From NCBI GenBank assembly GCA_965112735.1, contig OZ218963.1, positions 1,302,001-1,366,000 of the forward strand: DNA of 64,000 nucleotides. Reading direction: 5' to 3'. Source of the DNA: Phaeosaccion multiseriatum. Its lineage: Eukaryota > Protista > Ochrophyta, other classes. The position numbers were made by a program, and so were the translations under genes. Every line of letters begins with the position of its first letter. The stretch's first letter is position 1. This document shows positions 47,433 to 57,259 of this stretch, piece by piece. A model generated the notes under the pieces. That model was not told where the DNA came from, ran no database searches, and worked only from the letters and a program-made list of their open reading frames with translations.

Positions 47433-49226
47433 TCAGTCCTGGTGGGAAGAAGAGGCTCCCGCCAGCATGACGTCATCCACAAGGAGGCCGATGTCGCTGG
47501 CAGGCACGCCCAATAGCCCTGCTTGATACGGGATGGGGCGACGCGCACGGAACGGAACCGCAGGCAACAACAAGAGAGGGGAGATGAAAATGAGTGGCCG
47601 TGCGACAAGAGAGCAGTTCGAAGGCGGATGGAAAGGGCGGGGCGAGGCGAGGAGACACTTTAGCTCGACCCTCCCTTCCTTCTCAAGAAAAGGAGGACTT
47701 TCTTCGACCATGGAAAGAAAAGCGAAAAAAAGCCCAGCTTCTCCTCGTTTGTTCCCTTCTCTTCCCTCCTTCTCTCCTCCGGGCACGCTTCCGCCGAGAC
47801 CAACAGCATGCACTACGACCCCTCCTCTTCTTTCTCTCTCACCTTCCACGATGTCCCACGGAGTTCCGTTCTGAGATGCTCCACCACCCTCCCGTATCAT
47901 CCCCACGGCAGCCCCTCTCGCTTCCCGGGGGGGGGGGGCCTCTGGTCCTGCGGCGGCGGCTACTGCTGCTGCCCGTGCTGCTGCAGCTGCTGCAGCTGCC
48001 TTGTCGGAGCTACGGGAAGCTCTGGCGCCGGCTGCCCCGACTGCTGCCCCGGCCGCTACATTGACTTGCAGCACCAAGGAGAGCAAGTACACTCCTCCCA
48101 AAAGAGCCGCGCACAGATTGAAGGGGAAGGTGGCGTCCATCGGATAAGACAAGTCCCTTGAGGCGGCAAAGGCAAAGGCCGCTGTGCCCAACACCGGCCC
48201 TCCCACGTCGCCCACCAGCGCCGCCAGCTGTAGCAGCAGCACCATGCCACTCTTGCTGCCCTTGGTCCGTGCCGTGGCGCCCATGCTGCCGCCCCTGCTC
48301 GCGACGCCTTCGTTGGCACTCGTCGCACTGGCGCGCAGAGAAAGCTGCAGGAGCAGGGAGGCTCCAGACCTCGACAAGATGGTCGCACCGTGTAGCGAGG
48401 CCAGTGCTGCCAGCACACACGCCCACAGTGACCACCCCAGCGTGTCTTCCGCCCCACCGCTCGAAGAAGATGCGCGTCGGCGGCTTAACATCTGACGGTT
48501 ACAGGAGAAAGCAGAAAACACACGACGAAGCACACGTAACAGAGCGAGATGTAAAGGTTTGCCCCAGCGTGTGTGCGTGTGTGCGTGCGTGTACGCAAGG
48601 TATCAATAGGACCGGACCAGTCCAAGCCTCACGCACCTGTTGCACCTGATACAGGGCCAGCAGGACCACAATCTGCAGCCCGGCTCCGAGGCGGATGGCT
48701 CGCAGCGGCGATCGAAGAGGCAGACGCACCACCCTGGCTGGCAGGCAGGAGAAGACGCCGGCAAAGGCCACACCGGCCAGGGCCAGAGCCGGCCCGACTC
48801 TCTCGGGGCTGAAGCCCATGCCCCCGTCACTGATGGAGCTGAGCATCCACATGGGCAGTAGGGCCTCTAGTCCGGTCTGAACGGCGCAGCTCAAGACGTA
48901 CACCACCACCACAGTCACCAGCAGCGCTGCTCTGCCACCGCCATGGCAGGTGGAAGCCTCGCCCCCCCTCCTCCTCTTGCCTTTCTTCCCCTTCTCTGCG
49001 GCTGCCCTTCTGCTGTCTGGCAATACTCTAACCCTGCGCCCTCTCGAGAGGAACCCGCCACCTGAAGACGAGCAGCAGGAGCAGCACCACCAGTTACTGT
49101 CTCCCCCCACCCCCGCCCCTCCTCCTCTTCCTCCTCCTCCTCCGCCTCCGCCTCCGCCTCCACCCCCGCCCCTCCCTGACCGTGCTGCTGCTCCGGCGAC
49201 GATGCCACGAGCCATGCCCCCACCAT

Positions 49227-49257
<31 letters not shown>

Positions 49258-50763
49258 TTCAAGGTCAGGGTCACTTCTCTCCTCTCCAAGCAGGTCCGGC
49301 CGCGACCCTCTACCCTGTTTCCGATGCGCCGCCTGAATGGCCTCCACGATGGCCTGCTCCGTCTCTTGCTCCGTGTCCCTGCTTCTGCTCCATCCCGAGC
49401 CCCCTCCCCCTCCACCACCGCCCCTGCCCCAGCCCACGCCACCACTCCCAATGCTGCCCTTTGGACGCAAGGGTCTTGCGCGACCATCCGATGAATGTTC
49501 CATTTCTATCCCATCCTGTAGAGACCTTCTTCGTCGCCGCTTGTGCCCCCCTTCTCCATCCCCAGCCCCAGGGGGCGGGGGGCGCACCATGCCACCACCG
49601 TTGTCCTCCACCCCGCCAGCTTCGGCAGCCGCTCCAAACCGCACATCCTGTTGCCACCGTCCTTCTCCTCCCCCCCCCGCCGCCTCCCTCTCCTCGTCTT
49701 GTAGCACCCACATTTGCCGCGTTTCGTCATAGGTGAATTTGTTCTCCTCGCCCAGATTAGCAAGAGTGGGTCTCTTGCGCCCACCCAACCACAAGCGTAG
49801 GCTGGAGCCCCACCCTCCCCCCCGTTGCCCCCCGCCACTTGCTGTTTCTCCCCTCCGCGTCGGTGGGTGAGTGCCTCCGACTCCAGCCGACACAGAGGCG
49901 AGAGGCCCATTGCTGCTGCTAGCGCTACTGTTGTGTGCCACCACTGACGGTGGTGAGATTTGGACGTCCTCTGGACAAGCCTCGTCGTGCCCAGGCGGCT
50001 CTCCGATTTCCAATTGCTCCACCAGCTCTGTCAACCCCCTTTCCTCTGGCGCTTCCCCGAGCTTACACGTGGAGGTGCCCCCAAGCTCTTGGGGAATCTG
50101 TTCCAATGGAATCACTTCCAGCAAGGCAGGTAGGAAGTCCGTTCCACAAATCTTGAGCTGTGGATGCGTATGCACAGAAAGAACGCGTGGATTGGGGCGC
50201 AGACGGACGAAAGAGGGAGTAAGGAAAGCCTGAAATATGAAATGTTAAAAGCTGAGGTGGATCGCTGACTTGCAATCAATAACATCAATTCACCTGCCCC
50301 TTCTTGCCCTGTATCCTCCCTCTCCATGGCGTTCGTTTTCTACTCTCACCTTGGCCTTGGTATTGGCGGAAAGCACATTGGCGACAACTTTCCAGGAGCC
50401 GGCGAACCACCAAGGCGCATTTATGATGATGATCGCGCTTTGGCGGCCAGGGTAGTGGTTCTGCATAACCTCCGCAGTGGCCGATAGGTATGTCAGCATG
50501 ACCTGGACGGCAGCGCAAGGCAATGATGGGCACAAGAAGGTTACTGAGAGCAGGGCTGAGGGCGCACGCGACGACTCGAATTAAGTCAGGAGAGGTGAGG
50601 CACGCCAAGGGGGGTCAGCCAAAAGGGACGAATGCCAAATACCACACAGTTTCGTGTACTCTTCTTACCTTGTTGTTCCGCACGGTATTTAGCGTGAGCC
50701 CTTTCACATCCAAAACGGTCGCCAGCGTGTCATCTGGCACAACAAACGCACACAAGGGCGCGT

Positions 50764-50845
<82 letters not shown>

Positions 50846-52741
50846 GAGATGGAGAGAAAATGGGTCAAATGCCGTTCGAAGGGAGGGGAGGGAGTGTCTA
50901 GCAGCACAGTCACGCCCGGCCAAGCCTGAGTCTGAGGGAGATGACGTCACGCCCGGCCAAGCCTGAGTCTGAGGGAGATGGATGGGGTGTGGGGTGGAAG
51001 GACGCCGCACAGCACTCAGCACTCAATAGGGGTCAAAGGCGCTCTTTGTGAGCCTCCCACCCAACCTCCTCCCGCACCACTACAGTTCCGGCCGTACGTA
51101 CGTACAGTGCATGCAAACTGAAAGTAATGTAACGCTACGTACCATCGCCCATCGACAGCCGGGTCCATATGTACTCGTTGACAAAGGTGTAGTGCCGCTG
51201 CATTGCAGAGCCGTCCACCCCCAGCGCTGCGAGGCGACCGAACTGCATCCTCCCCGGGCTCTCGTAGCACACGATTTCTCCCTCCTGCAGCCGACATACA
51301 TGGGTCGAGCGAGAGAGCGTTACTCAGAGATTGTGAGACCAAGGCTAATTAATATAGAGTGTGAGCAACAGTATGTGTGGCTTGCAAAAGTGAGGGCAGC
51401 AACTTACACCCTTTCTCCGCTGCTGATACTGCTGCTGCTGCCGCTGCTGATGCTGATGCTGCATGCCACCTACCTTGGTTCTGCCATGCAAAAAGTGAGG
51501 GTAGCACTCCTTGATGAGGTGGAAATTGGGTTGCCTTTCTCGCAGCACGCGTCCCACTTTCATCTCCTCCTTCCAGCGGCAGGTCGCGTCCCACATAGCC
51601 TGGGCCTTGCGCTCTGACCGGCACGCCCGGAGGTACCGGCCCGGGGGGGTTGTTGGGCTAACCTGGGGGGTTGTTGGGCTAACCTGACCGTCCCCTGACT
51701 CGGTGGCCCCACCCCGCCCTTCTTCGAGACTTAGCAGAGGTACCGAGTCTGTAACTGCCCCTGCCCCTGCCCCTCCTGCTGCTGCTGCTGCTGCTGCTGC
51801 TCTTGAGCGAGACTGACGGGTAGTGGGGACTGGAAAAGCAATGACGACTGCAGAGATCAGCGCAGCAGTCAGGACGCAGACTAGAGCCACCGGCTTCCCG
51901 TCGAAGGCCGAGACGCCCCAAGTCTGTTGCCCGTGAAAGGAGGGGGAGAGGTGTAGAGGGGGGAGGGGAGGGAGGAGCAATTGGTTGGGGGGAGGTATTC
52001 TCGATAACGGCCCAGCTCAGGACAGGACAGGGTGGACACAGCAGCAACGAAAAGGCTACTCACCCACCCACCCACCCATGCATGTACGCACAGTCACAAA
52101 CGCACCTTCCTCCATAGAAGACCTCCCATCAAGGGCCCCGCCGCGAAGCCTATGAAGAACATGACGTGAGAACTCGCTCCCTCCACAGACGCCCCAGTGC
52201 CACCCGTCAGTGTATTACCTTTAGCACTGGAGCTTCCGGTCCGTCTTTCCTCCTCGCTGAAGCTGTTGCTGTTTCTGCTGCTGACGACACACTTACAGAG
52301 CAAGCTCGTGAGCGCCCCACTCAGGCTTCGTGCCAGGAGGAGGCCACCGGCGCTGTCTGCAAAGAGACCAAGCCATATCAGCAGCAGCGAGGTGGCGAGC
52401 ACAGCGCCCATGAGTAAGCCTCGGTGCGAAGGGAAGCGGGCCATGAAGGGCCAGCATACGTTGACCACTCCCCTTCCCGCCATGTAGCCGGCATACACGT
52501 GGCCCCATTGTCGCGCGACGAGAGCCCACTCCTCCGGGTCTCGCTGAGTCGCATCGATAGCCTCGTCGTCCTGAAGCTGCCCCTGTAGGTCTAAAGCGGC
52601 CTGCTCCTCCTGCTGCGGCATCGTGTCCAGCCCCAGGTACTCGTACAGCAAGAGAGGTCCAATCGGAAGGAGCATGGAGCGCACCAATGCGTCGCATAGC
52701 AGCGCCACGTTCAAGCTACTGCTCCTCCTGGCCCTGCCCAT
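47433..52741 (-). CDS. MFS (ZIFL/DHA1-like) transporter with a CRAL-TRIO/Sec14 domain and a Sec16-like motif in the central loop, multi-exon
   Basis: N-half: LLLARSLSG, GFAAGPLMGGLL. CRAL-TRIO: RYLRAC, YPHFLHGRTK, TVLDVKGL, MQNHYPGR..IINAPWWF..W, LLEVIPLEQIPQELGGT. C-half: LLPMWMLSSISDGGMGFSPERVG, GDVGGPVLGTAAFA. Confidence 0.82.

Positions 52742-53073: not shown

Positions 53074-57259
<4,186 letters not shown>

Follow-up and report, generated by a model that had tools for sequence, protein, structure and literature searches.

A predicted 12-helix major facilitator superfamily protein with a Sec14/CRAL-TRIO domain in its central loop in Phaeosaccion multiseriatum and other ochrophyte algae

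The sequence analyzed was a stretch of 64,000 nucleotides from the ochrophyte Phaeosaccion multiseriatum (GenBank assembly GCA_965112735.1, contig OZ218963.1, positions 1,302,001 to 1,366,000 of the forward strand), here called the window, and the subject of this report is a single gene on its minus strand at 52741-47433. The gene has 8 exons, all introns are GT..AG, and the reading frame is unbroken from the start ATG (52741-52739, minus strand) to the stop (47435-47433, minus strand). The product of 1234 amino acids (aa) consists, in order, of six transmembrane (TM) helices, a complete Sec14/CRAL-TRIO domain, a disordered linker of 358 aa and six further TM helices. The architecture proposed is one gene and one polypeptide with a 12-TM major facilitator superfamily (MFS) fold and a complete Sec14 domain in the loop between TM6 and TM7, to which a probability of about 0.95 was assigned. 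The gene is not a one-off; it is one of a conserved family with members in diatoms, a pelagophyte and a pinguiophyte. An original prediction, made from the letters of the DNA, had described here a chain of exons on one strand running from an MFS N-half through CRAL-TRIO and a low-complexity linker to an MFS C-half, and that chain was recovered at these coordinates with the frame kept. The parts of the gene are listed below in coordinates of the window.

47433-52741, minus strand: whole gene; GT..AG introns, frame kept; 32 of the 35 residues that are invariant or near-invariant in a 45-member family alignment are identical in the product.
52106-52741, minus strand: exon 1, aa 1-212; TM1-TM5 of the MFS N-half, with D17 and R21 (TM1), R138 (TM4) and the TM5 core GFAAGPLMGG.
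51474-51923, minus strand: exon 2, aa 213-362; TM6 (51896-51834), low-complexity linker, and start of the Sec14 domain from ~51644 (RYLRAC...YPHFLHGRTK).
51143-51284, minus strand: exon 3, aa 363-409; Sec14 domain (EGEIVCYESPG...), aligned to the closest relative, P0001, and to the family consensus.
50669-50733, minus strand: exon 4, aa 410-431; Sec14 beta-strand with the invariant D418 (LDVKG; D in 92 of 92 sequences).
50350-50502, minus strand: exon 5, aa 432-482; Sec14 core (HYPGR...INAPWWF...), matched by Pfam CRAL_TRIO.
48637-50157, minus strand: exon 6, aa 483-989; C-terminal end of the Sec14 domain (50157-50008), Gly/Ala/Arg-rich disordered linker (50007-48934) and TM7-TM9 (48933-48637).
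49696-49764, minus strand: short linker motif ANLGEENKFTYDETRQMWVLQDE (aa 614-636) within exon 6; pattern present in 25 of 92 relatives and common to P0001.
48637-48933, minus strand: TM7-TM9 part of exon 6, with the conserved residues E913, W919, GG927-928 and R971.
47843-48491, minus strand: exon 7, aa 990-1205; TM10-TM12 and an Ala-rich tail; the C-half is 39% identical to P0001.
47522-47842, minus strand: probable intron 7 of 321 nt with GT..AG ends, free of stops and in frame; the C-terminal motif conserved in the family comes after it.
47433-47521, minus strand: exon 8, aa 1206-1234 and stop; conserved C-terminal helix VPASDIGLLVDD, which aligns with IPLADVSNLIQD of P0001; D1215 in this motif is conserved in 67 of 68 sequences.

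The fusion can be read within single exons. Exon 2 is one stop-free exon with TM6 and the first ~57 residues of the Sec14 domain, and exon 6 is one stop-free exon that runs from the final ~50 residues of the Sec14 domain through the 358-aa linker to TM7-9; because each holds both TM and Sec14 sequence, the fusion is independent of splice choice and of the joining of separate genes. Both exons lie inside open reading frames (ORFs) that the original prediction had pointed out: ORF 51345-51980, credited with a TM helix and the start of CRAL-TRIO, contains the true exon 51923-51474, and ORF 48499-50175, credited with the CRAL-TRIO end and C-half TM helices, contains the true exon 50157-48637. The chance of the 507 codons of exon 6 being stop-free was calculated as ~1e-6 at local base composition. 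The guanine-plus-cytosine fraction was 0.73-0.81 at third codon positions of the structured exons and 0.49-0.60 in entire introns.

Relatives were collected by two protein searches, to a total of ~190. With exon 6 as query, an exhaustive HMMER search gave 92 proteins, of which many had lengths of 800-1100 aa; the other search started from the Sec14 region of a diatom member and gave 101 proteins of 533-1257 aa, nearly all with a precomputed annotation of CRAL_TRIO only. Word-index protein searches gave no match with the TM7-9 region and, with P0001 as query, P0001 alone, probably through low-complexity words swamping the candidates. When the spliced protein was compared with the 92 relatives by local phmmer, the closest was P0001 (947 aa; E 3e-109, the match taking in the Sec14 domain and both TM halves), and dozens of others matched twice in the same run, in the Sec14 region and then in the C-terminal TM region. 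Identity to P0001 was 38% in the N-half, 42% in the Sec14 domain and 39% in the C-half; since these values are similar in all three parts, the whole protein and not one domain is orthologous to P0001. CRAL_TRIO was detected in 45 of 45 long relatives scanned, MFS_1 or Sugar_tr at E<=0.001 in only 3 of them, and hydropathy plots of complete relatives had mostly 4-6 peaks before the domain and ~6 after it. The source names of these proteins read only "CRAL/TRIO domain containing protein" or "hypothetical protein".

The diatom sources were Nitzschia inconspicua, Nitzschia sp. Nitz4, Cyclotella cryptica, Cyclotella meneghiniana, Stephanocyclus meneghinianus, Grammatophora oceanica, Amphora coffeaeformis and Bacillariaceae sp., and the other ochrophyte sources were Pelagophyceae sp. 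CCMP2097 (a pelagophyte) and Phaeomonas parva (a pinguiophyte); the architecture that the original prediction had proposed seeking among stramenopiles is therefore present in diatoms and other ochrophytes. A FastTree phylogeny, whose long branches make it only indicative, grouped the gene product with Phaeomonas, P0001 and a Tara Oceans sequence; this small group, without diatoms, stood separate from a large clade of diatom members. The proteins of P0001's cluster, of Phaeomonas and of Grammatophora come from MMETSP transcriptome assemblies, so that single messages encode the full architecture in those organisms. P0084 is an uninterrupted genomic ORF on a 35-kb Tara scaffold (called as a gene at 3001-5769 in L001, within a longer open frame), and P0075 is another on a 20-kb JGI contig (3001-5598 in L002); being uninterrupted, both give evidence independent of splicing. 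The possibility raised beforehand, that the parts would prove to be separate transcripts, was thus answered in relatives by transcripts and intronless ORFs that carry the whole architecture.

Structures were predicted with AlphaFold for P0001 (45-sequence alignment; mean predicted local distance difference test score (pLDDT) 73.7, predicted template modelling score (pTM) 0.60) and for P0112 of Nitzschia inconspicua, which is 24% identical to P0001 (92-sequence alignment; mean pLDDT 76.9, pTM 0.66). Most of the TM helices and of the Sec14 domain had pLDDT of 85-97 in the P0001 model, where the linkers were <50; in both models the two connections of the Sec14 domain are long and of low pLDDT. 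Both TM halves aligned together to solved MFS structures (Z 19-20, 345-368 residues, 3.6-4.4 A), in P0001 over residues 2-897 with the insert skipped. The best MFS matches of P0001 were human SPNS2 (Z 20.1, 348 aa, 3.6 A), the DHA1 protein SotB (Z 19.5) and DgoT (Z 19.4), followed in order by NupG, OATP1B1, GlpT, FLVCR, MdfA, NorA and MFSD2A; those of P0112 were SotB (Z 19.9, 345 aa, 4.3 A), DgoT (Z 19.1) and SPNS2 (Z 19.0). These scores are well above Z 13-14, the level possible for unrelated helical bundles. Since the scores of the MFS subfamilies tie within 1-2 units, structure assigns no subfamily. The insert matched Sec14 structures at Z ~22 over ~227 residues, best AtSFH5 (Z 21.9) and SPF (Z 20.8) for P0001, and SPF (Z 22.1) and AtSFH5 (Z 21.5) for P0112. 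Foldseek with the whole P0001 model returned Sec14 proteins in all of its top 50 places, and the MFS fold was seen by the VIA search, which is independent of Foldseek. Transferred via 38-42% identity, these models predict that the TM halves of the gene product form one MFS fold, as the original prediction had supposed.

Pfam scans of the gene were made exon by exon. CRAL_TRIO was matched on exon 5 alone (E 2.3e-11, 44-48 bits vs a cut-off of 22.6) and MFS_1 weakly on exon 1 (aa 12-147, TM1-TM4; E 2.4e-5, 23.9 bits, gathering cut-off 33.4); among single exons nothing else was detected, the rest being too short or too divergent. Of the split MFS_1 around CRAL_TRIO that had been expected, the CRAL_TRIO part stood and the MFS_1 part appeared on exon 1 only, below its cut-off. 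In P0001 the CRAL_TRIO match spans profile positions 3-153 of 153, and the gene product aligns there unbroken. The best PDB sequence matches of exon 5 were yeast Sfh1 and Sec14, and the family profile aligned with residues 60-269 (native numbering) of yeast Sec14 at E 2.5e-34. The entire CRAL-TRIO fold is present, N-terminal helices included. Conservation within the protein is highest in the Sec14 domain, whose family-specific near-invariant residues include YPHxxHG, HY, E399, D418, HYP and QIPxExGG.

We take the residues of Sec14 that contact the lipid head group to be Y111, Y122, S173 and T175 for phosphatidylcholine (PtdCho), and R65, K66, E207, T236 and K239 for phosphatidylinositol (PtdIns); both lists are said to go back to the work of Schaaf et al. 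in 2008 on Sec14 and Sfh1. The positions were compared in a printed alignment to 1AUA, which reproduced the expected residue at each of them. In the PtdCho set, Y111 corresponds to L357, Y122 to C368 and S173 to L413, and T175 is kept as T415; the family consensus at these four positions is i, v, l, v. In the PtdIns set, R65 corresponds to C313, E207 to G450 and K66 to R314, and an ungapped local alignment pairs T236 with T479 and K239 with K482; three of the five assumed positions are thus kept or conservatively replaced. Because the head-group residues are only partly kept, classical PtdIns/PtdCho exchange is unlikely.

By hydropathy the gene product has 6+6 TM segments. The link from these to known transporters was made through P0087, a canonical MFS_1 protein (E 1e-60) returned by the exon 6 HMMER search: the family C-half profile matched its TM7-9 with an hhalign probability of 88% over 89 columns, via the block ...LW.(S/P)P...GGLGY....G, and P0087 is the sole sequence bridge from the family C-half to canonical MFS proteins. 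P0087 itself is 1068 aa long with two tandem MFS_1 units, the second of which holds a ZIFL-like block, SLWavSPkniGGLGYstedvG; an ESM-atlas look-up of P0087 returned generic plant MFS_1/Sugar_tr clusters only, with no family name.

The plant ZIF/ZIFL antiporters of the DHA1 type (ZIF1, rice ZIFL/TOM1) share with the gene product the 12-TM MFS fold and a TM7-loop motif, LW..(S/P)...GG(L/M)G(F/Y), which corresponds to 'motif 1' of rice ZIFL, EIFSLWAESDRKYGGLSFSSEDVG (PMC3041735), and to LEALLPMWMLSSISDGGMGFSPERVG in the gene product. The TM5 antiporter motif C, G-x3-G-P-x2-G-G, is present in the gene product as GFAAGPLMGG (aa 198-207) and in P0001 as GFTAGPLIGG, and the Arg-rich TM8-TM9 loop, RSPLRAIR, matches the ZIFL pattern [RK]-x2-G-P-[IV]-x3-R only in part. 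The TM6-TM7 loop of ZIFL proteins is short and plain and has been termed a 'variable region' (PMC3041735), whereas that of the gene product holds a whole Sec14 domain and linkers of several hundred residues; the original prediction of a ZIFL/DHA1-like protein with a normally plain loop here agrees with these shared motifs. Unlike ZIFL proteins, the gene product lacks the N-terminal Cys motif C-[PS]-G-C (CPGC) and the His motif [PQ]-E-[TS]-[LI]-H after TM6 (PETLH) anywhere in its 1234-aa translation (definitions from PMC3041735), its MFS signature is degenerate, and the similarity is marginal. The description that suits the TM core best is that of a new, divergent MFS subfamily, outside the ZIFL family, whose closest recognizable kin would be ZIFL/DHA1-type antiporters. 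Buried charges are conserved across the 92-sequence family (D17 in 72/77, R21 in 66/79, R138 in 85/91 and E913 in 86/90), as are many helix-packing Gly and Pro residues, and because of this conservation the TM core is probably a working, proton-coupled transporter.

Lys and Arg residues number 30 on the predicted cytoplasmic loops and 9 on the others. From this count and the usual MFS topology we infer that both termini, the even loops and the central loop are cytoplasmic, which would set the Sec14 domain at the cytoplasmic mouth of the transporter. The mechanism proposed for this arrangement is a hand-off. The TM core would act as a proton-coupled DHA1/ZIFL-like antiporter of the exporter type; the tethered Sec14 domain would bind a hydrophobic ligand other than PtdCho near the cytoplasmic mouth and pass it to the inward-open cavity, or take it from the cavity; and the two parts would jointly move a lipophilic molecule across the membrane and off it. 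Because both tethers of the Sec14 domain are long and flexible and the buried charges are retained, hand-off was favored over rigid gating. It is offered tentatively, at somewhat below even odds. The functional readings of the original prediction, gating by lipid or delivery of lipophilic cargo to a tethered carrier, are plausible. More doubtful is the specific form in which a lipid-transfer domain is covalently joined to a transporter or flippase, the Sec14 domain extracting or delivering a lipophilic molecule at the cytoplasmic leaflet and the MFS core moving the same molecule across the bilayer; if true, this would be a two-step, one-polypeptide route for export or import of a lipid-like metabolite, conserved in ochrophyte algae.

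Several observations weigh against a transporter that hands lipids to or from its own carrier. The known substrates of ZIFL proteins are small polar chelators, not lipids. As a set, the PtdCho residues are absent from the Sec14 domain and the PtdIns residues are partial. Contact between the Sec14 pocket and the transporter cavity is putative. The TM halves are barely recognizable as MFS from sequence: N-half and C-half profiles run against PDB sequences gave no significant MFS match (the best being GLUT9 at E 0.008, and none for the C-half), so that MFS membership rests on predicted structure and one profile link. The fold evidence consists of models of orthologues, P0001 and P0112, that are 31-42% identical to the gene product. 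Motif A of the TM2-TM3 loop, G-x3-D-[RK]-x-G-R-[RK] (PMC3041735), is degenerate, reading W-P-F-M-A-R-F-P-S-H-R with only the Arg residues remaining and the family columns variable, and diatom members have S-[IM] in place of the GP of the TM5 motif; transport activity is not assured for these two reasons. A search for RNA from the locus returned only four DNA-like runs of one sample and no RNA run that covers it.

Two other functions were weighed against hand-off. In one, possible although unlikely, the MFS core carries an ordinary small solute and the Sec14 domain reads membrane lipids or a lipid signal and so switches or localizes the transporter, as SPX does in the SPX-MFS proteins. The loop between the two rocking halves would be a suitable place for a sensor, and its ZIFL counterpart is a variable and possibly regulatory region (PMC3041735). 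The partial retention of the PtdIns set (R314 for K66, with T479 and K482 kept), the standing of the Sec14 domain as the most conserved part of the family and the solute antiporters found as nearest sequence kin of the TM core all fit such a role; however, the long disordered tethers on both sides fit direct mechanical gating poorly, R65 and E207 of the PtdIns set are lost, and any regulatory contact is hypothetical. Considerably less probable is a 12-TM part that has lost transport and acts mainly as an anchor or scaffold in the membrane, from which the leashed Sec14 domain shuttles lipid at a contact site in the manner of MOSPD2, a precedent for a membrane-anchored CRAL-TRIO protein (PMC9692390). 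The degenerate motif A, the loss of the TM5 GP in diatoms, the very long linkers with a short motif conserved in 25 of 92 relatives, and the faster divergence of the TM halves (mean column identity 17-24%, vs many near-invariant columns in the Sec14 domain) are all in keeping with an anchor. The family-wide conservation of buried D17, R21, R138 and E913 and of helix-packing Gly and Pro residues would then be hard to explain, twelve helices are a costly anchor, and both models show a well-packed MFS cavity.

The architecture itself could be an artefact, with two or three neighboring genes (MFS N-half, Sec14, MFS C-half) mis-joined in the gene model, or an assembly error. The locus was seen in DNA-like contigs only, and two intervals of the model are ambiguous. 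The two stop-free exons that each hold TM and Sec14 sequence speak against mis-joining, as does the same order of parts in transcripts and intronless ORFs of other species; lone genes for six-helix MFS halves would be non-functional; and independent short-read contigs match the compared pieces exactly. The artefact is close to refuted. The contigs in question, from four short-read DNA runs of one sample, are identical to the compared pieces of the locus, introns included, and break at repeats. 'Joints' in those runs were considered as splice junctions and rejected, their sides being 20-24 nt long and lying within CAG/GCT-type repeats.

Among proteins that resemble one or other part of the gene product, the Sec14-type transfer proteins (yeast Sec14 and Sfh1, the Sec14 domain of Arabidopsis SFH5, human SPF/SEC14L2) have the same complete CRAL-TRIO fold; they are soluble or fused to nodulin, GOLD or other soluble modules, whereas the domain described here sits inside a polytopic transporter. 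The lipid-carrying MFS proteins SPNS2, MFSD2A and the bacterial Spinster homologue show that an MFS fold can move amphipathic lipids, and SPNS2 ranked first or close to first among the structural matches of the TM core; unlike the gene product, they have no lipid-transfer domain, no specific sequence relationship to them was shown, and their Z-scores are tied within 1-2 units with those of many non-lipid MFS proteins. The SPX-MFS vacuolar phosphate transporters (PHT5/VPT1) are, like the gene product, MFS proteins fused to a cytoplasmic domain, in their case a ligand-sensing one; the SPX domain is N-terminal and binds inositol pyrophosphates, not lipids, whereas the insert of the gene product is in the central loop. 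MOSPD2, a tail-anchored CRAL-TRIO protein at endoplasmic reticulum contact sites, is alike in having its CRAL-TRIO domain permanently held at the membrane by TM sequence (PMC9692390), and differs in having a single C-terminal helix and an MSP domain and no transporter fold. The P4-ATPase-guanylate cyclase chimeras of stramenopiles and alveolates (PMC13466520) likewise join a membrane lipid transporter to a cytoplasmic module in a restricted lineage, within the broad group of organisms to which this alga belongs too, but belong to another transporter class, have another partner domain and are fused end to end instead of by insertion.

A full-text literature search, which did not cover most subscription journals and so offers no proof of absence, found no paper on a Sec14 domain within an MFS transporter and no characterized family of this architecture, in line with the original prediction. 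The only membrane-anchored CRAL-TRIO protein discussed in the literature found was MOSPD2 (PMC9692390), and a report of the Seminavis genome lists 40 CRAL-TRIO genes in that diatom with the present architecture undescribed (PMC7335047). The find is not categorically new: the sequences were already public under uninformative names and the two kinds of component are known, the combination being undescribed in the literature found. The TM halves have diverged too far for sequence models to detect, which is why the source names give no sign of a transporter; re-annotation from structure would bring to light a new and very divergent MFS subfamily. Lipid-transfer proteins and transporters or scramblases are increasingly thought to be paired; the known pairings are non-covalent and hard to prove, and we know of no lipid-transfer protein and secondary transporter that are hard-wired to each other in this way. 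In the manner of a Rosetta stone, a conserved natural fusion hints at a shared pathway for an MFS transporter and a carrier of the Sec14 type, and it provides a single gene for knock-out, localization and reconstitution. Diatoms, in which the family is widespread, are major primary producers and have an unusual metabolism of lipids and isoprenoids.

The Sec14 domain is joined to TM6 by a tether of ~64 low-complexity residues and to TM7 by the 358-residue disordered linker, which ends in a basic cluster before TM7. The motif ANLGEENKFTYDETRQMWVLQDE in this linker follows the pattern A-h-LG-x2-N-x-[FY]-x-[FY]-D-x5-W-[VI], forms a small beta-hairpin of low confidence in the P0001 model and is probably a partner-binding site. 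A Sec16-like identity of the motif (Sec16 C-terminal region) found no support in Pfam, which gave no family at E<=1 on the whole exon. A second linker island, EQAIVEAIQAAHRKQ, was found by comparison with P0001 alone and is common to it. Diatom members carry a conserved motif that forms a beta-hairpin just before the Sec14 domain (P0112 residues 434-441; consensus KCVYxDGSPAxVP), which the gene product lacks. Because diatom members differ both in this pre-Sec14 motif and in the loss of the TM5 GP, the family comprises at least two sub-types.

Two intervals of the gene, 52218-52150 and 47842-47522, are GT..AG, a multiple of three in length and stop-free, and either could be spliced or retained in frame. 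The first, of 69 nt, was rejected as an intron: its removal truncates TM5, and reading through it gives a full TM5 (SHVMFFIGFAAGPLMGGLLW) that aligns residue for residue with P0001 (SSVMRCLGFTAGPLIGGMFW). The second was treated as an intron because the short exon beyond it carries the family-conserved C-terminal motif. Comparison with orthologues thus suggests that 47842-47522 is an intron and 52218-52150 coding. A long (GT)n/(CA)n microsatellite lies at 50754-50857 inside an intron of the gene, and the contigs of all four short-read runs stop there. Plus-strand ORFs under the linker (48950-49336 and others) are Pro/Leu-rich, the antisense mirror of the low-complexity coding strand, and are not genes. 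The region downstream of the gene is part of a different large gene. Upstream on the same strand, at ~53077-54650 (minus), is a multi-exon AAA ATPase of the katanin/Vps4-like kind, with exons for AAA, AAA_lid_3 and the Vps4 C-terminal oligomerization domain (Vps4_C); it lies ~335 nt from the ATG at 52741, ahead of which there is a stop in frame at 52771-52769.

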